From Tubulanus polymorphus (taxonomy: Eukaryota; Animalia; Nemertea): a stretch of 64,000 bases of DNA. Under the pieces are notes generated by a model. That model searched no databases and was not told the DNA's origin. It saw nothing but the letters and a program-made list of their open reading frames with translations. Location: the NCBI RefSeq assembly GCF_964204645.1, contig NC_134034.1, positions 12,412,962-12,476,961 of the forward strand. Reading direction: 5' to 3'. The translations under genes and the position numbers were made by a program. Positions within the stretch are counted from its first letter, which is position 1. Every line of letters begins with the position of its first letter. Below, piece by piece: positions 2,887 to 59,700 of this stretch.

Positions 2887-12609
<9,723 letters not shown>

Positions 12610-20537: not shown

Positions 20538-29823
<9,286 letters not shown>

Positions 29824-31487: not shown

Positions 31488-32263
31488 GGAACAAAACTAA
31501 TGTCCGAAAGCGTCGGCTCTCCTTCGCCGGTCATGTGTCGAGGAGGTCAGACAAAGAGTCGGTCAGGAAATTCTGCCCTCTACACGCCCTCATACGGAAC
31601 ACGAAAACTAGGATGACGAGGCCTCACTGCCCCCACCTATCTACAAAGTGTGCTGAGTGATGTCAATGACGGGCATATCTGTGGGATTGCGCGGGATACA
31701 AATGGAGCGGTTATACTGGATTGTCACGCTACTAGCATTCATTGTGTCCTTGCGACCGCCCGGATGAGGGATGATTCTACTGTCACGCTCTTTGTTTCTG
31801 GTATTCTGAGTCGGCTGAGGGATGATTCTACTGTCACGCTCTTTGATTTCTAGTTTGAGTGCTAGTTTTCATTGTGTCCTTGTGACAACCTCGGTCAGTG
31901 GATGAAGTCTCTCGTCGGCTTGTGAGTGCTAGTTTCATTGTGTCCTTGTGATAACCTCGGTCAGTGGATGAAGTCTCTTGTCACGCTTTTGGGTGCTAGT
32001 TGAGATCTTGAATCTCAACCCGGTCAAGCTGGTTGTACTGCACTATTTGTGTTTCGTGCAATTTTACAGGTGTGTCAGTTACTGACGTCGCCCAGTACAT
32101 CCTGCAGTTAGATGGGGAATGTGAGGCGTCGTCATCCTGGGTTTCGCGTTCTGTGTGAGGGCGTGTAGAGGGCAGTATATTCCTGGCTGGCTCTTTGTCT
32201 GGTGTTCTGGGCATGTGACCGGCGACGGAGAGCTGTAAAGCTTTCGAACATTAGTTTTGTTCC
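31488..32263 (+). ncRNA. Long imperfect RNA fold-back (~235-bp arms, ~300-nt loop) derived from an RTE-type LINE fragment
   Basis: 31488-31723 is the reverse complement of 32025-32263 (ggaacaaaactaatgt...acattagttttgttcc). About 32 differences give G:U pairs on the + strand versus about 9 A:C. Confidence 0.8.
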
Positions 32264-35200: not shown

Positions 35201-36276
35201 GTACAAAAACAATTTGATAAGATTGATTATGCATTACTAAATTTGTTGTAACTCTGGTATTCCTAGAGATGACTAAAGATGCTTTAGTCGAATTGTTTTT
35301 AAACTATAATAATCAACCGTTGCTTAGATATCTAGAATATAGATTAATTACGATATGAGTTGAATTTCATATAGATATTGTTTAATAATTGACTATTATC
35401 AAAATCTACTTACCGGTCCACATTGCTGATCTTATATATATGAATTGACACGTTAATTATGATTAGATATTCAAAAGGATTTTCTGCTCACAAGATTCTG
35501 CTCTTTTTTTCAGCAATACTACTAATCAACTAGTCATAAAATGTACCAAATGATCTTCAACCTTGTAATATAGATATTCCAAATCTCGATGTATTAAAAT
35601 AGGCAGTCAACTTAATTGACCCCAATCAGTCGCTTGCCGGCTCAGACTGGTTGGAAGATTAATTGAATGAACTGGAACCGAATTTCCCAATTATTATTTA
35701 AATTTCCCAATTATTTCCCAATTTCCAAAATCGCGATGTGTTAAATTAGGCGGAAAGAAGTTAACCTTATAGTATAGATATCCAAAGTCACTGATGTATT
35801 AGAATAAGCAGAAAAAAGTTAACCTTGTAATATAGATATCAAAAATCACAGATGTATTGAAATAGGCAGAAAAATTAACCTTGTAATATAGATATCCAAA
35901 ATCACAGATGCAGGCTCTGTCTGACAAACATCTTGACTTAATATGCTCTCTTCCCAATGTCATTTCACTAGCCAGAACTCTGGCGGTGAGAAGTCTGGTG
36001 ATAGCACCATCCAGAATCCGACTCCGGGACTGAGTCCGATGACACCCTCGGACGTTCCAACAACATCATTACCTAGTCAACACGCGGGACAAACAACTTG
36101 GAGGATGAAGACGTCAACATATACCCGAGACAAACTACAATAAACTTTCGGACTATTATATATACGGAAAAAACGACCCAAAAAATTATGTAAACTTGAC
36201 CCCCGATCACACGACTATATCTGTACTTCGATTTCGAAAAAAGACCAAAGAAATGTATAGACAAAATTCTTCAACC

Positions 36277-36997
36277 TTGTAAACTTTCGGACTACATGAA
36301 AAAAAATACCAAAGAAATGTATAACTTAGACAAAATTATCTTATTGTAAACTTTCGGACTACTAGAAAAAAAAATACCAAAGAAATGTATAACTTAGACA
36401 AAATTATCTTATTGTAAACTTTCGGACTACATAAAAAAAAAATACCAAAGAAATGTATAACTTAGACAAAATTATCTTATTGTAAACTTTCGGACTACAT
36501 AAAAAAAAAATACCAAAGAAATGTATAACTTAGACAAAATTATCTTATTGTAAACTTTCGGACTACATGAAAAAAAATACCAAAGAAATGTATAACTTAG
36601 ACAAAATTATCTTATTGTAAACTTTCGGACTACATAAAAAAAAAATACCAAAGGAATGTATAACTTAGACGAAATTATCTTATTGTAAACTTTCGGACTA
36701 CATGAAAAAAAATACCAAAGAAATGTATAACTTAGACGAAATTATCTTATTGTAAACTTTCGGACTACATGAAAAAAAATACCAAAGAAATGTATAACTT
36801 AAACAAAATTATCTTAATGTAAACTTTCGGACTACATGAAAAAAAATACCAAAGAAATGTATAACTTAGACGAAATTATCTTATTGTAAACTTTCGGACT
36901 ACGTGAAAAAAAATACCAAAGAAATGTATAACTTAGACGAAATTATCTTATTGTAAACTTTCGGACTACATGAAAAAAAAATACCAAAGAAATGTAT
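36277..36997. repeat. ~67-bp tandem repeat, 11 copies
   Basis: ttgtaaactttcggactacatgaaaaaaaataccaaagaaatgtataacttagacaaaattatctta repeated head to tail with no spacers. Confidence 0.95.
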
Positions 36998-39900
36998 TAT
37001 AAAAATGTATAACTAAAGGTCAACCAACTGAGATGATCGTCTCCAATAACGAACCCAGCAATCATGAAAGGTAACTTGATATATGTGGAATTATTTCGAT
37101 TTATTCTTTATGTAATGTTTTGTGATAACAGGACATCATCTTTTTATGATTGCAGCTAAGTTTCAACTATCAGAAAAAGCCCAGCTTGAGATCAACTACT
37201 CGGCCAAAATCTACAAACTGGAACGGTGCACAGAAAAGGGCATGACTGAACCCAGCAATCTTTATTGCCGGTATATATAGATTTCAGGCCTCATATGAAT
37301 ATCATTTAATAAGTGACTATCATCAAAATCTACCGGTCCACATGGCTGATCTTACTAGTCTTAAACAGTGATGAACTAGTCCTACTACTGTAATTGATTA
37401 TTGGGGTTTAAATTGGGCAATTGACGTCAATGAATTTTACTTTGTGAAAAACATTGTTGCTCGTTATTTGAAATGACATGTAAATTATGATAGATATATC
37501 TGTCTGAAATGTTTTGCTTTCTTCACTTTGTTTCAGCCAAACTACATCTCGGAAATAATGGTCTGAAGAAGACACCCACAACGATTACTGATTGACCCAT
37601 TTCCTGATGAAAACTGCAGAAGCCCAGGTGATAAGTTGAGGAGCCAGTGACGGATTAATCACTCGACGTTTGATTTCTATAAAACATTTTATCAAGAGCA
37701 GCAAAGACAATAGTGAATCTTATAAACACTGATTCGAGCAGCAAAACTAATGGATTATTTCATAAACACTGATTCAGGATAAACAATGTTTTAAAAGCAG
37801 CAAAGACAATAGTGCATCTTATTAGGAGCAGCATAGATAATAGTGCATGTTATAAACACTGAGATCCAGGAGCGGCGAAGACAATAGCAGAATTCTGTAG
37901 TAAAGTATTGATTTTTTACTTATCACCTTTTTGAAACCAGTCTGATCGATAATATAGTGTTTTCGAGGAAACTATTTTATAATGTTTTATCCAATGTGAG
38001 AGTCTATTAATAAAAGCTAAGCTCCATTAATTCAAGATATTGGTCTTCGATCCGTGGTTGATAGATAAGTCAAGTTAGGTTAGTCACTAGGGGTAAATGT
38101 CGGAGTCGAGCGCCTAGTTTGGACTCGTAGGTCTGTTCGAGTTAACGCCTAAACTGAGATATAGTTTCAACTTGATATTGATAACTTACCATAGTTAAAC
38201 ATAGTCAACTGGCTATTTGTCGGTATAGATATCACGTAGTTAGGAAACATAGGACATAGCGTTAGACCAGTGTTGATGTACAAATATTAAGTATTTGCTG
38301 AATTGTAGATGTACTAATTTGATGGCATTGATATTTTCGGACGGCCCATGTAACCAATTTGACAAATGAATCGTAGATGTCGATTTTCACATCGACCTGT
38401 AAGCCTCCATCAAACTGTTTGATGATCATAGCTACGTATTTGAAAACAAAAGCTTTATCTGAAAGGAGACCATTATTTACATTTGAGAGGTTAAGCTAGG
38501 ATTAACAAGACATAAAGTTATAGCTAGGACTAATTTTGAACGTTTTAACATCGTTTATAGCTGTTTGAACTTCTTTTATTGTAATGGGTAAATCCATATC
38601 ACGAGATGGCTCTCGTGAATAATCACTTAACTTCAAATTGGGTGTATAATGATTATTAAGGAGTGGCAGTGAATCGGTAGCGCTTTTTTAAATGGGCCCA
38701 GAACTTTACAGTGAAAAAATGCCTGCAGTTGTAAATAGAGGAGTTTAAATGATACATAGTACAAAATACAAGTACATAAATTAATAACAAAATAAATCAA
38801 AAAACCAATAAATAATCGATAGTTAATAATACAAAATAGAAGCACATAAATAAATAGATAATATTAAAAAATAGATTAAAAGTAATAAACAGCAATACAA
38901 ACAAACAACAAATTAATGTTCTATTTACATGAAAAGGCATTTTTTTAAATATTCATCAACAAGGTTCTTCATTTATCGAACAACCTTCCCTAAGTATAGC
39001 GAAAACCCGAGATCTTTTCTGTTGTTATTCAAAGCATTCTATCGGACTCAGTTATTGTAATGAACAAAACAAATAACCATAAACCTTAACTAAATCGAAC
39101 ACACTTAAAGAAAATAACTGATATGATAGAATGCTTTGAATAACTGTGAAGAAAGATCGACCCGTCCTTTCAACTAGCCGCGCTCAATCACTGCTGTGAC
39201 TGTTGATCGTTATACTGGGATAGACTTACTATTTAAAATCTGGTACATACATTTTACTTTTTAGAAAGAATGTAAAACAGCTCTAAACTTAAGTAATTGA
39301 TGTTATTGATTAGTTACCGATTGTATGATTATGTTGATGTTTTCGAAGCTGACAGAAAAGAACATCAGAATACTTAGTATTTAATGCCAAGGTGCTTGGA
39401 CATCTTTAAGACAGGCAAAGTGGGCAAAATTCTAGTTTTCTAGTGAAAGTAATGATTAGTTGATACTGAGATTTCCAAAGTGAATCTGTATGTTCCATCT
39501 CTAGTTTTAATGCTTTTATGTTGGAGACTGTTATTGTAACACAGTTTGCATGTTTGGAAATTAGGAGCTTGCATGGTGATTCCTCGATTAGATTATTATT
39601 ATTGTGTGAATAAAACGATGTACATTTTCATCATTCGCGCTGAAACTTTTAAGTTGTTCAGTTTTATAGCAACAATTCCACTGTGGTGCTTTTTAGTGGT
39701 TCATAAAATACTGATTTAGTTAAGGGCTTGTCGAAAATAGCAGGAGCATAGAATATAAGGAGCAGTTGCTTGATAGGCTAACTTGAGGATGCAGTGCTAA
39801 TTGGTCAATTGTCCTAGCTTTGTTTTGATTATCGGTTTAACCACGTCTGCGTGGGGCCTGTTATATCTGGACTCGAAGAATTTATGATTTTTATATTGAG

Positions 39901-40296: not shown

Positions 40297-41721
40297 CTTT
40301 GTTACGCTCAAACGTAACATTTGTAATAAGCTAGTTGATAATGTTTGAAGAAATCTCTTAAAGACGAGGAAAATTTGGCAATGTTTGTAGATTTCTTGTA
40401 ATAATTAAGATTAATTAGTTAACCTTAGGCTTCCCAGAGTGAGTGAATTTGTAGGTTTAATGTTTTTATTTTGAACTGTTTTTAAATAACTCATTTAGCA
40501 GGTATAATTGTTGTAATAAAACAACATACATGTTCGTCATTCATGTAAAAAATTTTCAATTGTTTAGTTATGTGTATTGCAAATATATGTATTTATTTCG
40601 CTGTGGTGCTTATCAATGGTTCATAAAATACTATTTTCATCAAGGCCCTTATGGATCAAAGTTTACAATTCTTTGTGTATTTTTGTCATTTTCCTATTGA
40701 TGCAAATTTTATAAATCAGCTGCAGTGGAAATGTATCGTAGATAAAGACTTCTAAATACCTTACATGTAACTTTGTTTTAAGTTAGTACAATTTCATACA
40801 TAGTAATAGAAATAAAATTACTATTAAAATTTGAGAAAATAAGCTAAAAGTTAATAATATGATATGTGAAAATAAAATGATGTTAGAATGTAAATCAGAT
40901 TGATTACTTAATCCTACGCTTTCTAGAGTATTTGGCCAGGTTTATCTCTGGTTTTAGTGCGGGGAGCCATGGACTCACGGTTTAAGAGTCCATGGTTGTG
41001 GGCCATAGACGTTTCTGTTTTAGAGTCTATGGTTGGACCATGGGCGTATAAACTCTCGTTTATAGTTTATACGCCTATGGTGAATGGACTAGTTGTTTTT
41101 GAAAGTCCGTGTTAGAGGAGCTTACGTTATAATTCCTCGAGCACAAACCTGGCATTTTGTATAATTGTTGTATGAGAATAAATATAATTGATTTTGATAT
41201 TTGTCATTCGTTTCAACAAGTGTTACTTAAACGAAGCACTACTAAAAACGAAAACTATATGCACCCGAGAAAACCGACCAGGCAGTTTACGTTTCCGGCT
41301 TAGGTGGTACAGAGCGCCTCAAGTGATGATTTCGAGTATCTTCGGACTTCTTTTTAGTCATGCATAGTTCTAATACCCCAAAGTGCATAGGTCTTCGTTT
41401 TAGTAGCGCATGGTTTTTAGTAACACCCCCATTTCACTGCCTTGCTATAAAATTAACTGCTTTTCGCGGCCGGTCCGTGAATCATTTTCACGAACCCAGG
41501 GCCACTTTCGGTTATCTGAGTTAGTCGACTATAGTCGAACTAAACGAAACCGAATGTCCATTAGGCCTAGTCGGAATTATTCCGATAAATAGTTCGAAAA
41601 TCAAGCACATTCGACCGCAAAATGTACCATGTTGATAGAGAATTTCTCAGTTTTTGGTACAGTACATTATACAATATAACGGCATTTTAAGGGTCCAGAG
41701 GGCAAGGTCCAGCGGCTCAAG

Positions 41722-41776
41722 AGGGTTAGGGTTAGAGTCTAGAGGGTTTAGGGTAAGGTGAAGGGTTAGGGTTAGG
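41722..41776 (+). repeat. Degenerate TTAGGG telomere-like tract
   Basis: agggttagggttagagtctagagggtttagggtaaggtgaagggttagggttagg. Confidence 0.6.
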
Positions 41777-42420
41777 TGTCAACTCTAGTCATCACTTATA
41801 AATACCTAATCAACATTTTTGAGATAGTTCAGTTCAGATCAGATCAGAACAGGGCCGACCTGCGAGTCGTGAGCTCCGGATACTATAACGAAAAGGCCGA
41901 CCTGCGAGTCGCGAGCTTTGACATACATCAATAAATAATATTCACGACAGGTCATCGAAAATATACTAGTTAGTATTCTCCTCGTCTGGATTCGGAGTTT
42001 AAGAGACGTTCGACAAAGGATCGCTTCCGATAGTAGAGCACACCTCTTAAATAGTCTCTCTAAAACATACGCACGGTATCAACTGGTCGACCGGCACGAA
42101 AGGACACCTTTCTGGTGTCTACGGGGGGTTTGGGAGTCCTCCCGCAGAAAATTTTGAAAAATTTAAAGGGCTGAGATGACATTTCCTGGGTTTTGGAAGA
42201 GAAAAATCCTGTTTTAATATGGGTACTTTTTTCCAAGGAATCAGCTAAGTCAAATCCATCCATGAAATAAATAAAATGTTGTTAGAGGAAAAATGTTGAC
42301 TACCGCATTAGCGGCAAGTGCGGTAGGCTAAATTCGCCACTGAACCGTTTTTTGTTTGTGGAACGACGGCTAGCTACTAGACTATCACGGACGTAAAGTA
42401 GTTTATACGTCCATATGAGT

Positions 42421-42836
42421 TTATCAAATGTTCCACTGCCGGGTTGAATACGCGCCTCTGTACCCAGCTCTCAACGATATCGAATTCCAGAGTCCCACGT
42501 CTTTGCGGTCCGAGATCCGACGCGAGTGGATTGACTGCATGATCGAATAATAAAACCCCGGCAATAGACAGATTTTAATTCATAAAAATTCTTATTCAAT
42601 TGAGTGGAGACATATTAGGCTTTTTAGATTACTTGCAGCAGCGTGGATCCTCTGGAAATTCTGCCAACAACTTCAATACGCTTACACTCATAATTTGAAA
42701 AAACCCAAATTTCTTTAATTTTGATGCTGGATTAAACGGTACATCATCATGTAAATCCAGGAGTCCATATTAAGAATTTCGTTTCTTGTTTTCGGTCTTA
42801 AAATGATAGTATCTGTTTTTTTCCAAAGTATTTTAA
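42421..42836 (-). repeat. Truncated 5' flank of a third unit copy
   Basis: 42562-42836 is a near-identical direct repeat of 55909-56187 and an inverted, more diverged copy of 30506-30713. 42421-42456 is the reverse complement of 31096-31131. Confidence 0.8.
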
Positions 42837-45800
42837 AGCCTGTTTGGTCAACGGATGGCTATAGTGACAATCAAAAAGATTGCTGATTTCACAATACTCT
42901 TCGGCAGCTAAACACTTGCTTCTAACCGGTCAACTAAGTGTCAGTGTGTCTGCATCATCATGTTTTCCGCACATCCTCGTCTCCGGACAATGTTGGTGGA
43001 AATATTGGGTTGAAAAAAGAGGTGGATTGCAAAAAAACCACTGACTGGTCAACTAACGAAGTTCAGAATAGCTAATTAACTAAACAAATAAAATAAAGAA
43101 TTTCAAACAAACATATATATTATCATACAACAATTATACGAAATGCCAGGTATGTGCTCGAGGAATTATAACGTAAGTTCCTCAAACACGTGGACTGTAT
43201 TTCAAAAACAGTCCAACCATGGACGCATAAACTATAAACTAGAGTTTATGCAACCATGGTCCAACCATAGACTCTAAAACGAAAAAGGTCTATGGGCCAC
43301 AACCATGGGCTCTAAACTGTTAGAGTCCATGGCTCCCCGCACTAAAACCAGAGGTAAACCTGGCCAATTACCCTGGAAAGCGTAAGATTTAATGTTGAAT
43401 CAATCTGATTTATATTTTTACTCTTAAAAGTTGACCCGGCCAGCCGCCTATCTACCTTGTAGGTATTACTTTTATAATCATGATCAAGCTAACCATAACA
43501 GATTCGGCAGTTATAGAGATTAACTGATTACAAATATCATTGTTACTTACAAAATGACAGCTGGCTGATCAGGAAAAACAAGGTATCATTTTTAGCCTTA
43601 TAATGAGCTATCCAAAAAATAAGATTACCGCACTAGCCTTTAACATCACAATTGCTACTGCAAGGTTTTTATTCACCAAAAACATTTCGATTACAACTGA
43701 TTCAGAAAATTTGAATCAATAGGATAATAATAAAATAACACAAAAGAATTGTAAACTTTGATCCATAGAACACCGACAATTGGGACCAGTCTGAATGTCT
43801 AAGACTATTAATTTGACAATTCATGAAGTCACCAGGCATAAGTGACATTTGGCTATTTCATGAAATATGAATCATTTTACCATATCAACTCTTCAAATGA
43901 CAATGTAAGAGATATTTAGGATACTCTGTTTATGTATCATCAATCATCAAAGAACCACATAACATATCTCCAACATTTAAACATTAAAACTCCATAAATC
44001 CACAAATTCGCTCTCTCAAATAATCAATCTCTAATTTCATTTCATTAAACATTATTCTTAAAAGAAAACTGAAATTTCGCAAACTTTGCTTGGTATTTTA
44101 GGAATTGTAAGTTACTCGTTAACACATGAGTGAACTGTATTCGAAAAACAGTTCAACATAAAAGCATTAAAACTATTAATACCTACAGATTCAAACTGGA
44201 AAGAGATTAACTAATCAATCTTAATTTTTTTCATGTCCATTAACATTATTTTACAAGATAACTAGAGTTTTAAGTAAGACAGCTAGAGTTTTGCCAACCT
44301 TGCCTGAGGTTTTCAAACATTATCAACGTTATTTTCTCAACATCGTTATGTTTAATGCAAAGTATTTTGAAGGTGTTTTTAATTAAGATATATTGAGTAT
44401 CATCGTATAGATATTTCATCTATCCATATATCTAGGTAAATTACAAATAACTGATCACTGATGAGATATCTACAATTAAACTGAATTCGATAACTTTTTC
44501 GAGATCGGAAATGCATCATGCGAAGATTTGAATCAGGCCCCATATATTGTAAAACTGACAATATAGCTTTCAAAACATAGCTAGGACAATTTACTAATCA
44601 ACACTGTTCATATTTCCTCATTTATAGAAAAGAATGCTCCTCTATCTTCGATAGGACCTCAGTTTGATGGTTGCTATAAATCTAACTAAACAGTCGAAAA
44701 ATTCTAAGATGAATAATGAACACGTATGTGTCGTTTTATTCTCATGACAAAACCTTGCTAAATGACGGGTATTTACATACTCGCGGAATTATCATGTAAG
44801 TTCCTCGTTAACAAATGGACTGTATTTTAATAGTTCGACATAAAAGCATTTAAACCAGAGACAAAACCTACAAAGTCCCTCTTCCGCTGCCCCTCGTCTT
44901 AACTTATGATTTTCAAACATTATCAGTTCGCTCATTTAATACATTTAATACAAAGTTATTTGAAAACATGACAATAATTTTACTATCGATAACTTAATCA
45001 CGTTTAAAGCTGTTTAACATTCTTTCTAAAAAAGAGTAAAATGTAAAATCTCCCAGATATTATCCCTAAAACGATCAACAGTAACAGCAGTGACAGGGTG
45101 TGCTATAGGTAAAAGGGCGGGTGATCTTTCATCAGTTATTTGAAGCATTCTATCAAATCAGTTATTTTTTCAGTGTATTCGATTTAGTTAAGGTTTATGG
45201 TTATTTGTTTTGTTTATTACTAACTGATCCGATAGAACGCTTAAAACAACAACAGAAATGATCATAAGAGGTTGGGAAACTCTAGAGAAGGTTGTTCCAT
45301 GTGAAGAACAACCTTTAATGATTAGATTAAGTTAATCAAAAGAAAATTCCTGATGATGATTATAATTATAGAAGTTAACTAATTGTTTGTTCGTTTTTGT
45401 TTATTTTTTTTATTACTTATGATTTTATTTGTTTTTTTTAAATATTTATTTTATTTTGTTATGTATTTTTTATTCATTGTTTTTTTTATTTATTTACTTC
45501 TTTAATTATGTATTTTGTATTTTGTACTATTTTTTACTATTTACATCATCAGGAATTTCTTACCGGTGGAAATATGGGCTCACTTTAAAAAAGTGCTACA
45601 AATTCACTGCTGCTCCTAAATAATCATTTATCATTAAAAACCCCCGATTTAGAGTTAAGCGATCATTGAAAGCAACTCAACCTTATGTTATGGATGATGA
45701 TGAAAGAAGTTAAAACAGCTATAAACGGAATTAAAACGATCAAAATTATTGCTGGCCATTATCATTTATTCCTTTATATCACATTACTCCTAGCTATACC

Positions 45801-47039
45801 TCTCTTATACCTCTGTGGATACAATGTACTAAGATACAAGTTTTCATATACCTAGCTATGATCATCTACATGGAAGCTCAATGCTAAAACTCTACGTGAA
45901 AATCGAGCTATTCTACTCATTAGTCAAATCACTTTTATGGGCATTGGAAAAAAATTATGGCATCAACAAATACAACACTTTGGTATATAAACTTAGTATT
46001 TGTACACAGAACACTGCCAAACATTATAGTCTATGTTTTTCTTAACTACGTGATGATATTCAAGGGCGTAGCCAGTCTATACTGAAGGCCCACTTTTTGG
46101 CCAAGGAATCATTTTCAAAACATCTTTATTCAAAGCCCATAAACTTGCTGGGCGAGTTTAACTAATCAGGTATCAACTTCCTTTATTGCGTTTAAAAGTT
46201 TCAACCGTTTAACCGACTACCCTCTCCCTTTTGAACATTCAGGCTATGCAAATCATTTTCACTCTCAGGAAATATATAAAATGAATCACTGTTTCTAAGA
46301 GACCCAACTATGTCATTATTACAAATCATGCAAAGCTATGTTGAACTAAGTATGAAGATTATCTGAACTATCCTGTTGATATCATATCTCAGTTTAGGTG
46401 TATTTCAACGGACCTACGTCGAACCGTGACGCTGAACGCGATCAATACCATGAATTAATGGAGCTTAGATTTCATGAGACTTCAAGAAGGAACTTTCTGT
46501 CGCATTACAAAGGACATGACACATCTGTTTACAAATCGAAAACAGTTTGCCTAATCAATATGAAAGAATTAGGATGCCATTTTATTGAAATATTCAAATA
46601 TGAATAGTTCCTTCTCAGGCCCAGAGCCCTAATTATCTAACTTCAATTTTCATTAATCAACATTAAAACTATTTCTTTATTTCCGCCTCTTCAAATAGAC
46701 AGTGCATTTTAAAACGCATTTTGAAACCCATGTTACACGTCAGACTGGTTTGTAAAAAGGTAATACACAAAATAAATCAATACTTTACATAATCTACTGA
46801 CGTTGCTGCTCCTGAACAAGTGTTTATAAGATACGCATTGTCTGTGCTGCTCCTGAATAACTGTTCACAATATATATACATTGTCTCTGCTGCTCCTGAT
46901 TAATTGTTTATATATAACACACGCATTGTCTCTGCTCCACCTGTAGAAGAAATCCGTCATTGGGCGATAAACCGCTGCTGGCTGAATTTCTCATCTGGAC
47001 TTCTAGGCCTACGCAGTTGGACTCTTCTGTGGTAGTTGA

Positions 47040-50000
47040 TGATTTCAATTCAAGTTAGAATAATCCGTTGGCAGTTTGAATCAGTAGATTCTAGATGACG
47101 AGTTGATCTCAGGCCGAGCTTCTTCTTATAGATGTGATTTAGCTGAAATTAATAAAAGAAGATATCCTGTAATTATACAATATCTTACAATATACACAAT
47201 TTTTCATACAGCATTAATCATAATAAATTCCATGTAAATCAACTTACCTTTCAAGATAACTGGATTTAGTGTCGGCTAGGAGTTCTAAGTTAGTTGATTA
47301 GTAAAATTCAAGGTGCATTCTTCTGTTGTCTGTTCTAATGAGTAGATTCGAGATGGTTAGTTGATCTTAGTATGGGCTTTTCTTATAGATGTGATTTAGC
47401 TGAAATGCACAAAAGGAGATATCCTGTATTCACACAATATTTCATATAGCATTAATGAAAATGGATTCCACGTGAATCAACTTACCTTTCAAGTCGGTTT
47501 ATGAGTTAAATTCGTTCTGTGGTAGTTGATGATTTCAATTGGAATATTCTGTTGGCTATTCGAATCAGTAGATTTTTGACTAGTTAAATCTTAGGCATTT
47601 TCTTATAGATGTAATTTAGCTGAAATGAATAAAAGAAGATATCCTGTAATGAGACAATATCTTACAATATACACAATTCTTCATATAGCTTTAATCATAA
47701 TAAATTCCATGTAAATCAATTTACCTTTCAAGATAACTGGGTTTTGTGTCGGCTAGGATTTCTAAGTTAGTAAAATTCAAGGTGCATTCTTCTGTTGTCT
47801 GTTCTAATGAGTAGAAACGAGATGGTTAGTTGATCTTAGTATGGGCTTTTCTTATAGATGTGATTTAGCTGAAATGCACAAAAGGAGATATCCTGCATTC
47901 ACGCAATATTTCATATAGCATTAATGATAATAGATTCCATGTGAATCAACTTACCTTTCAAGATTGCTGCGTTAAGTATCGGCTAGGATCGTCTAAGTCG
48001 GTTCATGAGTTAAATTCGTTCTGTGGTAGTTGATGAATTCAATTCAAGTTGGAATATTCTGTTGGCTATTTGAATCAGTACATTTTTGACTAGATAATCT
48101 TAGGCTGAGCATTTTCTTATAGATGTGATTTAGCTGAAATGAATAAAAGAAGATATCCTGTTATTAGACAATATCTTACAATATACACAATTCTTCATAT
48201 AGCTTTAATCATAATAAATTCCATGTAAATCAATTTACCTTTCAAGATAACTGGGTTTAGTGTTGGCTAGGATTTCGAGGTTGGTTGAGTTTGAAGTTGG
48301 TTCTAAGTTCAAGTTGCATTCTTCTGTCGACTGTTTTAATCAGTAGATTCTAGATGGTTAGTTGATCTTAGTATGGGCTTTTTCTTATAGATGTGATTTG
48401 TGATAACTGGGTTTAGTGTCGGCTAGGATTGTCTAAGTCTGTTCTCTAATCGGCAGATTTTAAACGAGTTGTTGACCTCAAGCGCCGCAGTTTCATATAG
48501 ATATTACTCAGCTGAAACGAGTTAACAAAGATATCCTGTAATTACAAATATTTCATTCAGAATTAATCGTAATAATTTCATGTATATCAACTTACCTTTA
48601 ACGATTGCTAGGTTCGGTATTGGCTTGTATACTCGGTGTGTTGGGACATTAGTTTCGAACCCCAACTGCCTAATTATTTGTTGTAGTAGTAGCATTAGTT
48701 CATCACTGTTTATGATTAATGACGGGCCGGATATATATCAGATCAGCAATGTGGACCGGTGCATAGATTTTGGTAATTAAATGCCTCTTCTGTGCGCTGT
48801 TCTCTAATCGGCAGATTTCAAACGAGTTGTTGATCTCAAGCGAGGCTGGTTCACATAGGATAAAGCTGAAATGGTTAACAAAGATATCCTGTAAATACAA
48901 ATATTTCATTCAGAATTAATCGTAATAATTTTATGTATATCAACTTACCTTTAACGATTGCTAGGTTCGGTATTGGCTTGGATACTCGGTGTGTTAGGAC
49001 ATTAGTTTCGAACCCCAACTGCCTAATTATTTGTTGTAGTAGTAGCATTAGTTCATCACTGACTAATGACGGCCGGATATATATCAGATCAGCAATGTGG
49101 ACCGGTGCATAGATTTTGGTAATTAAATGCCTCTTCTGTACGCTGTTCTCTAATCGGCAGATTTCAAACGAGTTGTTGATCTCAAGCGCGACTGGTTCAT
49201 ATAGATAGGATAAAGCTGAAAGAGTTAACAAAGATATCCTGTTAATACAAATATTTCATTCAGAATTAATCGTAACTAGTGGAAAGCCCATGGACACCAC
49301 AGGGGATTTCTAAACAGGAACTTATTTCCAACTTATTATTTCGTTGCATGTTAATTGAGTATTTGGGCATTTTAAATTGGCCTTATTTATGTGGTGTGAT
49401 CAGCTGTGCCCATATAGAGACCATACAGGATCTCAGGACTCACTTGACCTTCTTCCCATGGAGGCCCAAGGTTACAGAACTATAGATAGAAACAAATATG
49501 TAAAGTACCGATATGATCATTTCATAATGTATGAATTTCATGACCCGGCAGCTGGGTCACAAAGGCAACAGTAGCTCGTACTGTATCAACAGTGACAACA
49601 GTGGCTGTCTCTAGTCAGTGGCTATACAAGCTGACCCATGCACCCTCTGTGAACAGTAGGAGAGACTACAAAAATTTGGAAAGTGAATAATTTTGAATGG
49701 AAACCATGCCCAAGCGATAAAAGACGTCGAGATCTCCCGCCGGGCAAATTTTCAGGGCAATTCATCCAGTAACGATGGAGCAGTCGGTACAACAATTCAG
49801 TATCATTATATAAGATAATTTCATGTATATCAACTTACCTTTTATTATTGCTTTGTTCGCTATCGGCGAGGATCTCCTAAGTTGGTTGGTTGATGTTGAG
49901 ATCAATTCAAATTGGCCCCTTCTGTGTGCTGTTCTCTAATCGGCAGATTTTAAACGAGTTGTTGATCTCATGAGCGGCAGTTTCATATAGATAGGATTTA

Positions 50001-50920
50001 GCTGAAAATGAGTAAACAAAGATATCCTGTAAATACAGATATTTCATTCAGAATTCAGGCCCCTTCTGTGCGCTGTTCTCTAATCGTTAGATTTTAGATG
50101 AGTTGTTGACCTCAAGCACTCGTTTGACTTTGTAGCCGGGTCACATCGTACTGTATCAACTGTGACAACAGTGGCTATCTCTAGTCAGTGGCTATGCCAG
50201 CAGACCCATGCGCCCTCTGTTTACAGTAGGAGAGACTACAAAAATTTGGCAAATGGCGCTGTTCCAGTTGGTCGATTTTGGAAGAGTAGTTGATCTCAAG
50301 CTGGGTTTTTTCTTATAGTTGCAATTTAGCTGCTATGATTAAAAAAAGATATCCTGTAATGACAAATTATTTCATTTAGAATTCATCATTATCATTTCCA
50401 TAAAATATCAACTTACATATCAAGTTTGCTGGGTTCCGTATCAGTTAAAATGTTCTAAGTTCATTGATGCATTTGATTTAAGCTGGAATTGTTGTGTGTG
50501 CCGTTCTTATCGGTAGATTTATGATGAGTTGTTCTCAAGCTGGGCAGTTTGATGAAGATAGGATTCAGCTGAAGAGTTAACAAAGATATCATGTAATCAC
50601 AAAACATTTCATTGAGAATGAATCGAAATAACTCCATCTATATTAAGTTACCTTTTATGATTGCTGGATTCGTTATCGGCGTGGATCATCGAAGTTGGTT
50701 GGTTGATTCTAGTTGGCTGTGCGCTGTTCCAGTTGGTCGATTTTGGACGAGTAGTTGATCTCAAACTGGGTTTTTCTCATAGTTGAAATTTAGCTGCAAT
50801 GATTAAAAGAAGATATCCTGTAATGACAAAGTATTTCATTTAGAATTTATCGCAATAATTTCAACTATTTTAAGTTACCTTTTATGATTGCCGGGTTCAT
50901 TATCGGCGAGGGTCTCCTAA
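47040..50920 (-). repeat. Tandem array of ~12 exon-intron modules (83-105 nt GT-AG introns, non-coding exons)
   Basis: Repeated (AAG)|GTAAGTTGA...TACAGGATATC...TTTCAG|CT units, e.g. introns 50878-50794, 50651-50569, 50416-50330, 48948-48866, 48595-48512, 48238-48134, 47954-47869, 47724-47620, 47485-47400, 47247-47143. Confidence 0.85.
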
Positions 50921-53276
50921 GTTGGTAGTCTAATTTTACATATCTTTTGTTGTTTTTTTTCTGTGTAAATAGTCCGAAAGTTTACAATGTTTGAATTTTG
51001 TCTAATTTTACATTTCTTTGCTTTTCTTTTCATGTAAATAGTCCGAAAGTTTACAAGGTTAAGATAATTTTGTCTAAGTTTTACTTTTTACTTTTGCTTT
51101 CTCCCCGTAAAGTTTTTTCAAAATCGGAAATCGAAGTACAGATATAGTTGCGTGATCGGCGGTCCATTTTACATAAATTTTCTTTTCTTGAAATCCAAGC
51201 ACATAACGGGAAATTCGGTTCCGGTGCCTTCAATTAATCTTCCAACCTGCCTATTTTGATACATCGAGATTGGAATATCTATATTACAAGGTTGAAGATC
51301 ATTTTGTACATATTATGACTAGTTGATTAATAGTATCATATAGTGCAAACCTGCTAGTAAAATTGCCCCTATATACATTACTATTCCCTTCGTATTATTA
51401 AATTAACTTCATCGCCAATTAATAAACTTTTAAGAGATATGTATTCTTCCCACAGACATCTGTGCCCAGTGAATGGTATTCTAATCCATTTCAGTAATTT
51501 TAAATATTGCTGGTAAAATATATACAATGATATACTTATGATTATGATAATATAACTAGCTTAACGAACCCAGAATTCCCCAAAACCTAACTGATTCAAC
51601 AGATCCCACACACATGTGGCCCAGTTAGACGCAGACAACATTGCACGATACAGTCGTCTCATCCACTGCGCTATTTTTAATAAACTTAAATTCGTTATAT
51701 TGAATTGATTCTAACTAATTTTCTGATACCTAAGCGATCCATTAATTAGTAATCATACTAGCCACAATTAATTGTCAGTCGAACAATATTTATATGGAGC
51801 CTGAAAACCTACGTGAGTAGAATTTCAGATGTGGTGAATTCATCACTATTTGAATTCATCAGAACTTAAGATAAAATCACATTTTTAGTGGTAAATTAGA
51901 AATTCCCTTACCCGAATTGCAATATAATCTTTATTTCCCTTTTATAGTACACTGTGTATAAGGATCGAAAGACCTTGTTATGACCGGACCTCCCTGGTGC
52001 GGTGCAAGACATGATGCCGGAATATAGTTTGAAGGAGAGGGGTTAGTAAAAGAGAGCTATTAGCGAGAGGAATAAGACCTAAGTTCAGGATATCCTGTCA
52101 GAATAAGGCTCTCAATCTGACATACACAGTGAAATTGAAATATTCTCCCTTCCAAATTCAGGAATGTATTTTGCACAGATTTGTTTTATCTCCCTTCGAT
52201 CAGAAGTAAATCTGCGTTAAATGATTTTGGCAATATGTATCAAAACTAATACAGCTGTATGAAGACACAATAGGTTCACTTAGATGCACATAAATAAGTA
52301 ATGTGCTCAGATACACATGTATCAGCTACATTTTTAATGTCAATGTACTTGAATTCAAAATAATTTCACATCATTGAATTTACCTTAATTGTAGATATCT
52401 AAGTAATACCTTAATGAGTAATTCACCTTAGTTATATCCTTATTCATCCCCACCGTTGGAACGTCCAATGGTGCCATCGGACTCAGTCCCAGAGTCGGAT
52501 TATGGATGTTGGTATCACCAGACTTCCCACCATCGGAGTTGGACTTCTGGCTAGCGAAATGACAAGATGAAGAGAGCATATTATATATTAAGTCAAAATG
52601 TTTGTCAGACAGAGCCTGACCACTGTGGTTTGAGAAAGCTTTAATTATCTCATAACCATCCCTATCATTAATAGTATTAACTATTATCGTGCCACAGATT
52701 TATGCCAGCTCCGTTCGTGTCTCGGGGTAGGTACATATACAGCCAAACCATATACCTCTTCCCCACACGATAAGTGTTTTTTGAGAACACCTGTATTTTG
52801 GAATTAGTAAAAATCAACCCCTGATATACCACTATCGCCCCAAGTTTGCTTAAAATGAGCTGAAATTAAATAGTACATAATCATTAATTAACAAGACAAA
52901 ATTTGCAACTATATCTAACTTTGATAGTGGATGATGAAAAAGATGAAAGGCCAGGATGAGGGGTCTGAATCAGAAATCGAAGCTACAGAGTTTAGGATGT
53001 ATTTGAAGTACACAAAAGATGCTCGAGATTACAGAGTTCACGAATACAACATAGACGATATCATCCGCTGCGACAAGAAAAATTGGGAAAGATTTTGATG
53101 GAAGGGGAAAGAACCTTGGATGAAAAATAAAATTTACACAGTTTCACGGCTTAAATCGATGTACAACCATATAGACGCTGGTAATACATAGTTTTAACGG
53201 CTTTACATCATATTTGATCTAACCTGAGAGAAAGAAGTCAGCACAGAACTTCTGGCTGATAACAGCAAAGTCCGGT

Positions 53277-53900
53277 TCTCAGGGTTCCAACTGGCAGCGG
53301 CAGAGTCGGAGTTCTGTAACGTGGCCTCGTCCCAGCTAGTGGCGGGGTACTGACGACACGGGTGTTACTACGGAGGACCCGTAATCAGAGTAAGACGGGA
53401 AGCGACAAACAACTTCGGCTTCGGGGGATATCCGATCTTCAAGCATCAACACCAAAAGATAACCGGCACCCAGAAGAGAGAGAGAAAAACTGGGTGAACG
53501 GGGAGCCCATCAGCAAGATGCCAATGGGTAGCCTTAGGCGAAGAAACCAGCCGATTCAGACTAGAATGGACCAAACTGGGGACCCAATTGAGAATTGAGC
53601 ACACCACCTAAGACAACCGACACCCAGATGACAAGAGAAAAACTGGGTGAACGGGGAGCCCATCAGCAAGATGCCAATGGGTAGCCTTAGGCAATGAACC
53701 AGCAGATTCAGACTAGAATGGACCAAACTGGGGACCTAAAGATCCAACAGCCCCCTCAGTCGAAGATTGCTACCGCCCCCATCTTATTCTGATCGTAGGT
53801 CCTCCATAGTAACATCCGCATCACCAGCACTCCGCCACTAGCTGGTAAGAGGCCACATAAGTGAACTCAGACTCTGCCGCTGCCAGTTGAAACCCTGAGA
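53277..53900 (-). ncRNA. Long imperfect RNA fold-back (~165-bp arms, ~290-nt loop)
   Basis: 53277-53443 is the reverse complement of 53735-53900 (tctcagggtt[c/t]caactggcagcggcagagtc...). About 15 G:U versus about 6 A:C on the - strand. The loop holds a ~100-bp direct repeat (53483-53585, 53633-53735). Confidence 0.75.
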
Positions 53901-56589
53901 TTGAGAGGGCGGGGGCGAGGGACGAATGAAATGAAAGAAAAAAAAATGAAAAAACAAAAATAATATAGAAAAAAAATGAAAAAAATAAAGATATAAAATA
54001 TACCACACATTCATACGACACATATTATAAACTCCATTCACTCCTCTTGCACACACCGCGCACACAACTCCATCCACCGCACACATAACTCCATCCACCG
54101 CACACATAACTCCATCCACCGCCACCGGCGCCACGCCACCACTCCGAAAAATACCGCGCCACAAGATCGCCAGGAAACACAGCAAAAGCTGAAGAGCTCG
54201 AGAGAACGCCATCTGATCGTGTCAAAGACTAGTACTCGATTGAAAGATTTTGGAGAAATTCCGAAGTTTACATTATCAAATGCAAACATAAATGTAGATA
54301 TTTTATTGAACGGAATTGATTTTTCAGTTCACGTCAGTTGAAAACCCGTTTTGATCGATGTTTTAATGTTTATTTTAAATACAAATTAGATTTAAGACCT
54401 AGGATTATTGACTAATATCTAATTGTGAGGGTAGGATAAAATGATCGCGGATAAATTTCCTGCTCGCATGCCACAGCTCTGTCAAATCTCAATCGTCCAG
54501 TGCTGCCCCTAAATACTGTGGCGAATACATAAACTAATCGATTAATATGCTCTACCCGTATTTGTACATGAGGCCTACCGTTTACTTATCTTACTTAGTT
54601 TACGTCGTTCGTGTCTTGTGGTATCCCAAGACTATAAATCATATTGGATCCATTTTCAGGGGTAGAGCTAGATAATTAAATGATAATTATCCGAACAGTA
54701 GATTGTTCTATTTTTTCTCCACGTCAAAGTTAATAGTTTAAAAATTCAAAATACAAATTATGTTCAAATTCAGATTTCACAAACAACAACTCGTTGGCCC
54801 ACTGAAAGATAGCAGCGAAACAATCTTCGGGTAATAAATGTTAGAAAGAATGAGGTTATCCTCTCAGGGCCTGGTTAATTGCGTTACCGTACCGTAATGA
54901 AAAAAAGTAAGCAAAGAAGGTAGGCCTGGACCGTGTAGGCTTACATTATCCAACTACAAAAGCCTTGACGCAACACCAACAAAATCGAAATGGAAAATAT
55001 CAAAAGTGCAGGATATCACATGCCTGAAGTAGCTTGGGCTTGAAGCTAATTACACCACGAGGGCAGATCTAGACAAATATATCCGAATTTCAATTGCTAG
55101 ACTTTAGAGTGTGGTCGAATGAGAGAGTATAGCATCTCAGGGAATGTCTAGAAGTTCAAATCACACTGCGTAGATTTGTTCACCTCAAGATTCATATAAA
55201 ACTCAAACAGTGCCATAAAAATGAGCACCTGAAGTCTACATCAAGGACGGGGGTGGCCATTTTATCAGAATCTTGGGAAGAAATCCGTCGAGGAAGCGTC
55301 GATGGATAAAAGCAAACACATCTGATTTAAAAAAAAAAACATGTTTTGATCATTAGTTTCCATAATATTGAAAGTATGCCTGTTTCAATAATTCTCATTA
55401 AAAAACCAAAACCGACCCTGAAAGATATATTCCAATGAGGTTGGTTTGCAATTTAGGTGGTAAACTATTGGAGATTTGGCTGTAGAAATATGAATCACAT
55501 TATGTTTCATGCAGTAGCCTATGTCGTAATACATTGACGCGATTGTGTGCTTATAGATTTCACATGGTCACGGTCGAATGATCGTGGGTGGTTCTCAGAG
55601 AATTTACTATACGCCAGTTCAATTGAGTCAATTCACGCTCGTAACACAAACTAAATCCCGTATACTCTAACGTGCGGTCAGCCCTATGGGCCCTGGTTGT
55701 TAATTATTAAGATTTTTGATGACGCGGTCTTTCGTCTTAGACTGTTGTTTGGTCATTGTTCGGAAGGTTGACCAAATTTCATCTGGGTTTGCATGCAGAC
55801 TTTTCGAATTTGTCTATACCCAAGCTTTCTTAGCGTTTTGAATGCTTAATTGGTGGTTTCTTCAGCCGACTTTAAGGCAAGGAGATTGTCGATGGAGTTT
55901 CTTTGTATCAATAGAGACAGATTTTAATTCATAAAAATTCTTATTCAATTGAGTGGAGACATATTAGGCATTTTAGATTACTTGCAGCATGGATCCTCTG
56001 GAAATTCTGCCAACAACTTCATTGCGCTTACCACTCATAATTTGAAAAACCCAAATTTCTTTCTTTAATTTTGATACTGGATTAAACGGTGTCATCATGT
56101 AAATCTAGGAACTAGTCCATATTAAGAATTTCGTTTCTTGCTTTCAGTCTTAAAATGATAGTATCTTTTTTTTCCAAAATATTTTAATGGCGTTCATATA
56201 AATGTTTGTTTATGGATAAGATTGGTAAGGGAAAAAATTTATTTGAGCCTTTCTTTTCGAAGACAGGATAGGTACTCAAGCAAGCAAGGAAAGCTAGCAA
56301 ACAAGAAACATCATCATCATCAATATCACGGACTTATGGAGGCCTGTTGAGGCCTATTGGTGTCCGGCTCGTTTGGTAATTAACATCAATTTAGGTGACG
56401 GTCGGTTTAAAATATTTCTCATGCAGCCATAGTTTGATATGCACCTAGCCCATCTAAAAGATGGGCGTTAAATGTTCTTTAGATCAGTTAGAATGGTTGC
56501 CAAGTATTGTAACATTACATGACTAGTTAAAAATATTGATATTGAATGGGACAGGCAACCAGTCTATAAGTGAAGGTAGAGACCGGTAA

Positions 56590-56781: not shown

Positions 56782-59700
56782 ATGTCGAGTGCAGGGATGG
56801 ATAAATGTGTCTTACACGTTTGTGTCGTGGGATTTCATCATAAAAAGGGATGCCAGGTAAATTAAAAACTTCCAAGAATCCGTCCGACCAAAATTCCAAA
56901 AACAAGAAAAAAAGACTGTTCCCCCAAAACACTGTAGTCACATTTAGCTGGCGGTCATCACTACCCCGGCAAACTCCTTTTTTTATCATGATGTTTTAAA
57001 CATACCTTGTATAAAATTGACCTCTTTCTATTAAAATTCTCTCTTCTTTCTTTACAAACAGTTAGAGTTTGCTTACCCGCCTCTAATAGAGGGTAACTCC
57101 GTCGACAGTCATGAATTACCCGACGTTTGGAAGCATTTACCATCGTTAGCCCTGCCAGACGGCGCCCATAATTACGAGAAAGACACGATTTATTTCCACC
57201 TGAAATCGAGAGACGATTCTTCTAACACGGTGTTCGGAGTTTCCTGTTATCGTCAAATATCGGCTCAGGTAAAATGAAAAAAACTCGATTCAGGGTTTCA
57301 TTAAATAGTTAATGCTAAAACGGTTAAGTTTGAACAACAAATGATATTGATATAATATATACATTGAATATATATAATATACAATGAATAATATGAAGTA
57401 ACCAATTTGATAGCTATTAAACCCTAAACCAGAAGCAATTAAACCATGACGCAGAAATGGCTTGAAAACTAGAATAAAGTCACAGTTAGATATTCTGTTG
57501 TTCTTGTATTAAAGTCTTGTACCGTAGCTTTATTTGATATTTCATGAGTCAGTTTCAGTCAGAAGTGGTCGAATCAATGGAAGTTTACAGATACAGAATA
57601 CAGTCATGTAGTAAATGTGACAACTTAAGACGAGTCCAAAGATATCTGACCACTTTTCAGGCTAACTCAACTTCGTCCTGTAGGTTGTTTAATTTTTCAG
57701 GATCTGATAAATAAAACTGCTGATATCACTAGAAGTACAGTACAGAAGAGTGTTTGTGTATTGAGTACTCTCGTAAGTCTGATATCTATCTGGTTGTTTT
57801 AGGGGTTACTAGTGTTCGCAATATACACCAGGGCTGGGTTTCATAGATGTGGAAGAAAAATAGTCCCTGGGAACATTTTGAAATTTGTCAGTTATTACCA
57901 TGGTTTCTCATTGTAACCATGGTGGTTGTCACCCAGATTGAGGATTTACCCCTAGGGATAACTTTGATACGCAGGCTATGAAACCAGGCCCTGGTGTCTC
58001 TACAGGGACCATTTTCATATATGCTTGACCTGTTGAATCTATCAGAAAAATCCAGTTAAATCTGCCTTTCGTTTCTGGGTGAAAAATCTTTTCTGATCTC
58101 GTTAATTTTCTTCCAGCCTCTGTACGGTCTGATACAGGCCAAACTAGAGCTGATCACTCATGCGTATTTCGAGGAACGTGATTTCAGCCAGGTGGCGCTG
58201 TTGGAAGCTATGTACACGAATTTGAACGCTCAAATCACCGCGAATCATATCAAAAGTCAAGCGTTTTTAGGTAACGGTTTCAAACCATACGAAACGTCAG
58301 TATTCCATTAGGAGGCTACGACTATATTGTATTTTCTTTTTTTTTTCTTTCAATTAAATATTTTTCAGGAATGTCAGCGCGCGATGTAGTCATTAAATAC
58401 AGACACAAAGTACTGATTCTATTTAAACTGTTGCTCCTAGAAAGAAAGGTAAAAAATAACTAAACTCTTGAGATGTCTTCGATCACCGGATGTGAGTTTG
58501 ACAGATTCGAGTTGGATTTCTTGCACCTAATTTGCTTCGAAGTCGGTTCGAACGCGGGAACATCAGCGGAACCTGATCCAAAATGAAACACAGTTTCATA
58601 GTAGAGTAGAGTTTAAGTTTATGAAAGTGGAATAATTCTATATGGATTCAAATTCAGCCAATAACTGTGGAACTGGGTCGCAGGACTTAGGAACTGGGTC
58701 GCATGGGAGTGATTGTAATAAAACTGTTCAGTAAGTGAAACCGAGTAAAGATTTATCTAATTCCTTGTTTTTAGGTGTTGTTTTTCATGTCTCCAGTTTC
58801 TACACTGAACAACGCGATGTTAGCAATATTATCACTGTTTCCTGGTGAGTACCGTAAACACGTATCAGTGACTCGAGTGAAAACTAAAACCCCTCAATGC
58901 TGACTGATTAATGCCTGAAAGTGCTGGATTTAATTTGAAAATTAAAGAAAAAGATTCCCAGTGTATTGAATAGCGAGTATACCGCTTAAGTGCGTCTACA
59001 CCAAGTGCTGCGATCTTTCAATAGAGATAGAAGATAATGATTAGTTATACTTCATCAATACACTGTGGTGCGGTGTACTCGTTCGTCACCTAATTAATTA
59101 ATACACGGCACTGCGGTGTAAACACACTGAAAGGGTTGATACAAAATGATTTCGATTGTTATGTTTCAGGTATGATTGAGAATGGATTAACGGAAGCAGC
59201 CGGAACAATCACGAGAAAAGTTTCCGCTACCCTCCGAGTCGATAGTTTCGGTGCCGATTTCATCGACGTATCCTATCTCCACGAAGACGACGACCTTGAC
59301 CCGCATGATGATAAACCGGATATCATCAAATCGCATCAGCCGAAATTAATGCTAGAAATGCCGTCGTCCAGGACAACTGCGAATAACTCGGGTTCGTAGA
59401 AATAAATCAAAATTCATCTCGGGAGTTTTTCTCCCAATTTTGATTTTCATCTCAATTTATTTATAGATAATTCGGGTAATTCCCCTCGAGTAACGCCCTC
59501 TAGTGGCGGAGGAACTCCTCGTTCGTCTGATCACGTGTTCTTCAGTTCGTCTCACGATTGTCCCGGTAAAGCGGTGCAGGTGGCGTCACCGGGCGGGTCG
59601 GCGGCGGAAGCGATCACTACTCAGCCGGGGATCGCCCCTGTTCCGTCGTTACCGTGCGTTCACACGGCCGCGTTACATCCCGAGAAAATCGGTTACCAAG

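Follow-up and report, generated by a model that had tools for sequence, protein, structure and literature searches.

In a 64,000-nucleotide window of the Tubulanus polymorphus genome, we characterized a 624-base fold-back (fold-back B, positions 53277–53900) whose best explanation, favoured on balance, is a dsRNA-forming hairpin module carried by a mobile non-coding element, with pairing kept by source-lineage selection and with a likely role as an hpRNA-like Dicer substrate. That the module is an RNA-constrained hairpin inside an element with terminal inverted repeats (TIRs) is the part we hold with good confidence; that the hairpin serves as a source of small RNAs is put forward only tentatively. 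The structure, copy context, termini and substitution pattern with its controls are observed, whereas transcription of the hairpin, the direction of selection and a dsRNA or small-RNA role are inferred.

In the proposed mechanism, the carrier (unit B) would be read on the − strand of the window, from a block X, through the hairpin and internal tandem repeats, to an AATAAA-bearing 3′ module. In this transcript the module would fold into a near-perfect stem of ~156 bp with ~11% G:U, and its structured loop would be made up of two 153-nt units in tandem. In the source lineages, selection would keep the stem paired as RNA while the DNA arms drift to ~83% identity, and inserted copies would then decay neutrally. 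Its most likely role would be that of a long dsRNA domain of the element's own transcript, resembling an hpRNA Dicer substrate. Small RNAs, if produced from the stem, could act only on the family, the one set of sequences that the stem matches.

Architecture of the fold-back

A repeat search of the window found the arms at 53277–53399 and 53778–53900 with 82% complementarity, and gapped alignment lengthened them to ~166 nt each, with a loop of ~287 nt between them. On the − strand the arms oppose 17–19 G:U versus 6 A:C, the exact G:U count varying with the arm cut points; on the + strand the same positions read as 17–19 A:C/C:A versus 6 G:T. The 19 versus 6 contrast in the window copy gave p = 0.015 in a two-sided binomial test. 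The arms have a G+C content of 56–58%, as against ~39% for the window, most of which lies at 30–45%. The initial annotation, made from the letters of the window alone, had described arms of ~165 bp, ~15 G:U versus ~6 A:C on the − strand and a stem GC-rich relative to its surroundings, and each of these descriptions agrees with our measurements. Folding of both strands, which it had also suggested, gave a predicted RNA MFE of −361.5 kcal/mol (z = −25.9) for the − strand and −301.3 kcal/mol (z = −21.3) for the + strand. The − strand fold is thus better by ~60 kcal/mol, and both folds lie far below shuffled controls.

The loop consists of two tandem units of ~153 nt that are 91–97% alike; by self-BLAST, 53442–53584 matches 53598–53736 at 91%. 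Each unit contains a 10-bp and a 7-bp local hairpin, both of which are kept in all copies according to RNAalifold on 20 copies. No Rfam 15 covariance model matched either strand of window positions 51500–56500 at E ≤ 1, and ARAGORN detected no tRNA or tmRNA. A known RNA family and a tRNA-derived SINE were accordingly rejected as identities of the loop. On the − strand, a long pyrimidine-rich tract in 53901–54000, running into ...CTCTCAATCTCAG, lies immediately before the first hairpin bases and overlaps them. It is conserved in all copies and resembles a splice-acceptor context. The coordinates of all features are collected in Table 1.

Table 1 Features of the window, with strand and the evidence defining them.
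Feature	Coordinates	Strand	Description	Evidence
Unit B copy	42343..56311	−	~14 kb, non-coding, both terminal inverted repeats lost	Collinear matches to nine other copies
Block X	55915..56187	−	Near unit B 5′ end; repeated at 42566–42836 and inverted at 30506–30714 in unit A	Self-BLAST, 91%
Conservation peak of unit B	53000..54200	−	Hairpin plus ~300 bp on each side (~1.2 kb)	Pairwise identity, 20 copies
Hairpin 5′ arm	53734..53900	− (sense)	~166 nt, 56% G+C	Arm alignment, − strand fold, RNAalifold on 20 copies
Hairpin loop	53447..53733	−	~287 nt, two ~153-nt tandem units; most conserved part of the module	Direct repeats, self-BLAST
Hairpin 3′ arm	53277..53446	−	58% G+C	Arm alignment, fold, RNAalifold
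Module M	43099..43416	−	3′ module of unit B	Homologous to 40887–41201 (+) of unit A, 85% identity
Fold-back A	31488..32263	+	Internal control in unit A, opposite orientation	G:U count, MFE

A multicopy module inside a non-coding unit

A search of the organism's own genome (268 Mb, 77 contigs) with fold-back B returned 23 loci at 86–98% identity; 20 copies are full-length, at 86–97% identity, and 3–4 are partial or rearranged. All 23 hairpin copies lie in unit-B context: sequence outside the arms agrees with the window in every copy, and this similarity continues for kilobases to either side. Immediately outside the arms stand ...CCGGT on the left and TTGAGA... on the right, which the copies share and which do not form direct repeats; comparison of the copies revealed no target-site duplication at the arms. 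With flanks common to all copies and no such duplication, a free-standing MITE or fold-back transposon was rejected. Judged by this copy context, fold-back B is an internal module of a larger repeat, neither a single-copy hairpin gene nor a free MITE. The initial annotation had named a contrary scenario, in which the arms would be the TIRs of a multicopy MITE with a target-site duplication and the other copies would lack strand bias. Its multicopy part proved correct; the rest did not, as the fold-back is never free-standing, has no target-site duplication of its own and is strand-biased in its other copies.

MITEs and fold-back transposons with hairpin-forming read-through transcripts share with fold-back B the inverted-repeat arms, the multiple copies and the potential to fold if transcribed. 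Unlike them, fold-back B never stands free, its flanks are common to all copies and it has no target-site duplication. In addition, its arms are ~83% alike and carry a strand-specific wobble pattern, which a DNA-level terminal repeat of a MITE does not need.

Unit B, ~14 kb long, appears to encode nothing. Its only stop-free stretches of at least 110 aa are GC-rich or repeat-derived ones of 126, 127 and 114 aa, none matched by Pfam, and no Pfam domain was detected among 20 stop-free segments of at least 65 aa. Nor did nine other unit B copies contain a long ORF beyond spurious GC-rich stretches. With no Pfam match and no long ORF, coding capacity of the unit was rejected.

The hairpin region is the best conserved part of the unit. 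Mean pairwise identity among the 20 copies is 91–97% at 53000–54200, 81–91% in the adjoining parts and 65–77% beyond 52400. Within the module the loop is more conserved than the stem (96–97% versus 91–93% pairwise identity). One copy, at ~7.3177–7.3184 Mb on C3, apparently has three tandem 153-nt units in its loop instead of two; its matches to window 53521–54532 and 52785–53736 overlap.

This conservation bears on a reading that we judge possible but unlikely, namely a structured RNA element left uncut by Dicer, which would serve protein binding, stability, localisation or processing in a long non-coding transcript, with no small-RNA output. The better conservation of the loop, together with local loop hairpins kept in every copy, suggests sequence-specific recognition over generic dsRNA, and, of a diced RNA or a structured scaffold, the high conservation of the loop favours the latter. 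The genome search, which turned up no target in trans, would also suit such an element. However, a near-perfect helix of ~156 bp far exceeds the needs of known protein-binding RNA elements, and the absence of an Rfam match also speaks against it. A helix of this kind and length is a typical substrate of Dicer and ADAR, and a dsRNA-forming module remains our preferred reading.

Wobble bias follows the orientation of two related units

The window contains a second unit, unit A (~30.5–41.2 kb, + sense), which self-BLAST showed to be collinear with unit B (− sense) in inverted orientation. Block X, several internal blocks and the 3′ module M are common to the two. Fold-back A, the hairpin of unit A, served as an internal control: it has 32 G:U on the + strand versus 9 on the − strand, the reverse of fold-back B, and its predicted MFE is −442.3 kcal/mol on the + strand versus −317.9 kcal/mol on the − strand. 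The wobble bias hence flips with unit orientation, as had been proposed from the letters of the window. Module M ends in AATAAA, on the + strand in unit A and on the − strand in the unit B copies C2, C7, C4 and C8; in the window copy of unit B this motif has been lost through a point change. In both unit types the G:U strand is therefore the strand with AATAAA, a motif like a polyadenylation signal, at its far end, which marks the sense strand.

The two stems had been called unrelated, and neither MAFFT nor BLAST detected homology between them; homologous loops were rejected on the same grounds, and the loop tandem repeats measure 66 bp in fold-back A versus 153 bp in fold-back B. Block X and the next block common to A and B are separated by ~3 kb that contain the hairpin in each unit but cannot otherwise be aligned between the two. 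For this reason we place both hairpins in a variable region and do not regard their positions as exactly homologous. A cassette swap, in which the hairpin flanks would be homologous in A and B, was rejected, as the whole 3 kb differs.

Other traces of the history of these units were observed. A satellite array of 67–68 bp at window 36237–36997 has ~11 copies in unit A and ~2 at the collinear position 50928–51088 in unit B. On C1, a hybrid unit at 30.744–30.764 Mb combines a B-type hairpin and 5′ part with an A-type 3′ part (matching window 37021–39743), which suggests recombination between the A and B unit families; its terminus is diverged (76% identity). Degenerate telomere-type (GGGTTA)n repeats occupy window 41700–41780, in the gap that follows unit A with its truncated 3′ end and precedes the X segment to the left of unit B, and include two exact 13-mers versus 0.08 expected by chance.

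Wobble bias across copies and its controls

To compare copies, the 20 full-length versions of fold-back B were aligned in − sense. All 20 are biased, with 15–24 G:U versus 0–8 A:C each, and RNAalifold indicated that the consensus hairpin structure is kept among them. The majority-rule sequence contains 138 Watson-Crick, 17 G:U, 4 A:C and 8 other oppositions (p = 0.007 for 17 versus 4, modest counts of which the ancestral contrast is a single historical sample). Its stem is near-perfect, ~156 bp with ~11% G:U, and its G:U pairs occur in both orientations, 9 in one and 8 in the other, being spread over both arms. The predicted MFE of the majority sequence is −398 kcal/mol versus −332.5 kcal/mol for its reverse complement.

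Variants arising among the copies were then sorted by how widely they are distributed. Those common to at least two copies changed Watson-Crick pairs to G:U 19 times and to A:C 7 times, though some of these shared variants may derive from recombination or gene conversion among copies and not from source lineages. Private variants gave 18 and 22, respectively, and the two distributions differ (Fisher p = 0.04). Pooling the ancestral and shared counts yields 36 versus 11 (p = 0.0003). A parsimony count on the tree gave 63 versus 34; we relied on the simpler count because the tree and the stem states conflict in places, a conflict that itself suggests recombination among copies. Compensatory double changes were found at three stem pairs.

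Mutation in the flanks provides no source for this bias. When ~2.5 kb of aligned flanks were compared, the rates per site were 0.241 for C>T and 0.235 for G>A, with no strand asymmetry, and 0.245 for A>G and 0.198 for T>C; strand-asymmetric mutation was rejected on these rates. The stem shows no A>G excess (5+5 A>G versus 5+4 T>C) and hence no ADAR signature. ADAR editing fixed through an RNA intermediate was rejected for this reason and for the DNA-transposon ends of the carrier. As a negative control we used a plain palindrome at 28715–29224, which has no G:U strand bias (5 versus 2; 2 versus 3). This nested palindrome (~510 bp; also at 4492–4655 and 57828–57996) has arms 85–87% complementary and belongs to a small dispersed repeat.

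Since the bias is present in every copy, flips with orientation and is unexplained by mutational strand bias, the best reading of the strand-specific wobble excess is RNA-level selection on the sense strand of the unit. The initial annotation had favoured the same cause, and the 20 of 20 biased copies, the orientation flip and the flank control now lend it support. The split between shared and private variants points to selection on the lineages that spawned new copies, where pairing of the − strand RNA would have mattered. Such a pattern would be expected if inserted copies decay freely after source-lineage selection for pairing.

We give only a slim chance to a neutral relic, that is, an old inverted duplication or a nested fold-back insertion in an ancestor of unit B, with wobble arising by chance or mutational bias and with no function. 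The sharp ends of the fold-back and its passive carriage by a repeat would fit such an origin, as would the unbiased private mutations (18 versus 22) and the fact that much of the signal stems from one ancestral divergence event. Against it stand the flanks without strand asymmetry in mutation, the strength of the pooled ancestral and shared contrast, the like bias of unit A on its own sense strand (32 versus 9), the unbiased plain palindrome and the position of the module at the conservation peak of the unit. We therefore retain selection for RNA pairing as the preferred reading.

The stem matches only its own family

When the own genome was searched with one arm (E ≤ 10), every match belonged to the 23 family loci, and no stem relative outside the family was found. 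In the remaining 63 kb of the window, no 15-mer is shared with the hairpin. Both arms contain stop codons in all six frames, and a coding origin of the arms was rejected on that account. Two conserved stem 22-mers had no exact match in a viral contig collection, and a conserved loop 24-mer had none in metagenome contigs, each being a weak test. The genome search with the stem, one of the checks that the initial annotation had suggested, thus revealed a multicopy sequence matching nothing but its own family. The same annotation had supposed a target in a virus, a host gene or another transposon; the own-genome arm search, which matched the 23 family loci alone, did not bear this out, and neither did the window 15-mers, the stop-bearing arms or the viral 22-mers.

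Long hairpins that feed RNAi are known mainly as single host loci directed against specific selfish genes, mostly in flies. Drosophila hpRNA loci are long inverted repeats that yield endo-siRNAs and whose arms are copied from the target gene (PMC10317233, PMC10292708). Fold-back B resembles them in its near-perfect dsRNA stem and sizeable loop, the fly loci being transcribed as one RNA with stems of hundreds of bp; their rapid, lineage-specific evolution is a further likeness (PMC10317233, PMC10292708). As in hpRNAs, near-perfect dsRNA from a long inverted repeat on one strand is predicted for fold-back B, with 156 pairs in the majority sequence. Arms homologous to a gene elsewhere, the other hallmark, were found neither in the own-genome arm search at E ≤ 10 nor among the window 15-mers. 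Moreover, Drosophila hpRNAs are single or few host loci, whereas fold-back B exists as 23 copies in a mobile unit, with no target beyond the family.

For these reasons we consider it very improbable that the hairpin is a host hpRNA gene, or cargo directed against a virus, a host gene or another transposon. Its architecture is indeed like that of Drosophila hpRNA loci with target-derived arms (PMC10317233, PMC10292708), but its 23 copies in a mobile unit are not one locus, the genome holds no other match at E ≤ 10, no 15-mer lies elsewhere in the window, the arms have no open reading frame and the viral contigs gave no exact 22-mer match.

We instead see the module as a variant of what is already known, akin to hpRNA-like inverted repeats on the one hand and to non-autonomous TIR transposons on the other. 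A designed parallel to its wobble pattern exists in engineered G:U hpRNA transgenes, in which C-to-T changes turn G:C into G:U pairs, so that the RNA stays paired while the DNA inverted repeat is broken (PMC9263138). With 18–26% G:U, these constructs avoid self-silencing and still drive RNAi (PMC9263138). The transgenes are designed and carry all changes in one arm; fold-back B is natural, with ~11% G:U spread over both arms (9 and 8). By analogy, the G:U hpRNA logic would explain how arms only ~83% alike as DNA can be almost fully paired as RNA, and a benefit of G:U in fold-back B, for example stability of the DNA repeat or evasion of silencing, may be supposed.

In contrast to the single host loci, a hairpin with a signature of RNA-level selection here rides in a mobile non-coding DNA element, and the sister family (unit A) bears a different stem with the same signature. 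If expressed and processed, such hairpins would mean that transposons in a little-studied animal phylum spread their own dsRNA sources, and they would be a natural counterpart of the engineered G:U trick, in which the RNA hairpin is kept and the DNA palindrome weakened. If not expressed, fold-back B would be an ordinary repeat with an odd substitution pattern. A wider proposal, which we regard as speculative and decidedly unlikely, is that related large non-coding TIR families each carry their own selection-maintained dsRNA hairpin, with differing stems, in the variable region downstream of the shared block. These hairpins would be mobile RNAi cassettes, acting either as triggers that tune silencing of their own family or as decoys that soak up host dsRNA machinery.

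The carrier has the ends of a DNA transposon

At the ends of intact unit B copies lie TIRs of 27–32 bp, with heptamer repeats next to them. The first letters of the 27-nt terminus are TATGGAAGCCCTGAGA, and repeats of the heptamer GTTGCCA come after it. It occurs 35 times in the genome, 17 forward and 18 reverse, and a reversed-pattern control gave 0; a longer terminal probe detected ~45 termini. Six other copies continue ~60 bp past the equivalent of window position 56311 and stop at a common sequence, after which their flanks differ. In the C7 copy the other end is the reverse complement of this common terminus. Pairs of intact inverted termini lie 14.35 kb apart in C7 and 14.85 kb apart in C5. 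Other pairs are 1–3.6 kb apart, and the elements that they bound are probably internal-deletion derivatives; short elements of this kind lie at 3.99 and 26.68 Mb on C2, 4.02 Mb on C1 and 2.02 Mb on C4. Among eight termini read, five distinct outer flanks were found. The insertion flanks of the two complete copies are ATAATT on both sides in C5 and GTATTT and GTATGT in C7; with only these two, a duplication of TA is also compatible with each. The window copy ends at 56311, 49 nt before the 5′ terminus would be reached, and no terminus motif was found in it. On its left side it runs into a second copy of block X, as is also the case where two units lie in tandem on C8.

Unit B is like non-autonomous, cut-and-paste TIR transposons in its TIRs of 27–32 bp, its subterminal heptamer repeats, its dispersed copies with unrelated flanks, its 1–3.6-kb derivatives and its lack of coding capacity. 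Unlike typical members, it is unusually large (14–15 kb) and combines a putative long non-coding transcription unit with a hairpin apparently maintained by selection and an AATAAA-bearing 3′ module. It is not obvious why a non-autonomous DNA transposon should need an RNA hairpin, and this counts against our best explanation, as does the loss of both termini from the window copy. So does the outcome of a transposase search: none of the 88 hAT dimerisation-domain matches and 8 Tc1 DDE_3 matches in the genome lies near any terminus, and neither domain led to a candidate autonomous partner. We rejected a relationship between the outer ends of the hairpin and the element termini, which have an 8-mer and a 9-mer in common but a local alignment score within the shuffled range.

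That the strand bias reflects a single-stranded DNA hairpin, in which one DNA strand and not RNA would be selected to fold with tolerance of G.T while the element replicates or transposes, is barely credible: G.T is also the least disruptive DNA mismatch and the folding methods used cannot tell RNA from single-stranded DNA folding, but TIRs and clean dispersed insertions fit cut-and-paste transposition with no single-stranded stage, the hairpin lies at least 2.4 kb from either unit end, and the favoured strand carries AATAAA in both unit types.

Two features of the genomic arrangement were also recorded. At 13.412–13.442 Mb on C8, two tandem B units are linked by a segment that contains X and is identical to window 42343–42950, and no terminal repeat separates them; the window and C9 have this junction too. 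Unit B copies and termini are found mostly toward chromosome ends (e.g., at 0.5–5 Mb, or a few Mb from the far end), and the 88 hAT domain matches lie almost all at 7–22 Mb, in chromosome middles.
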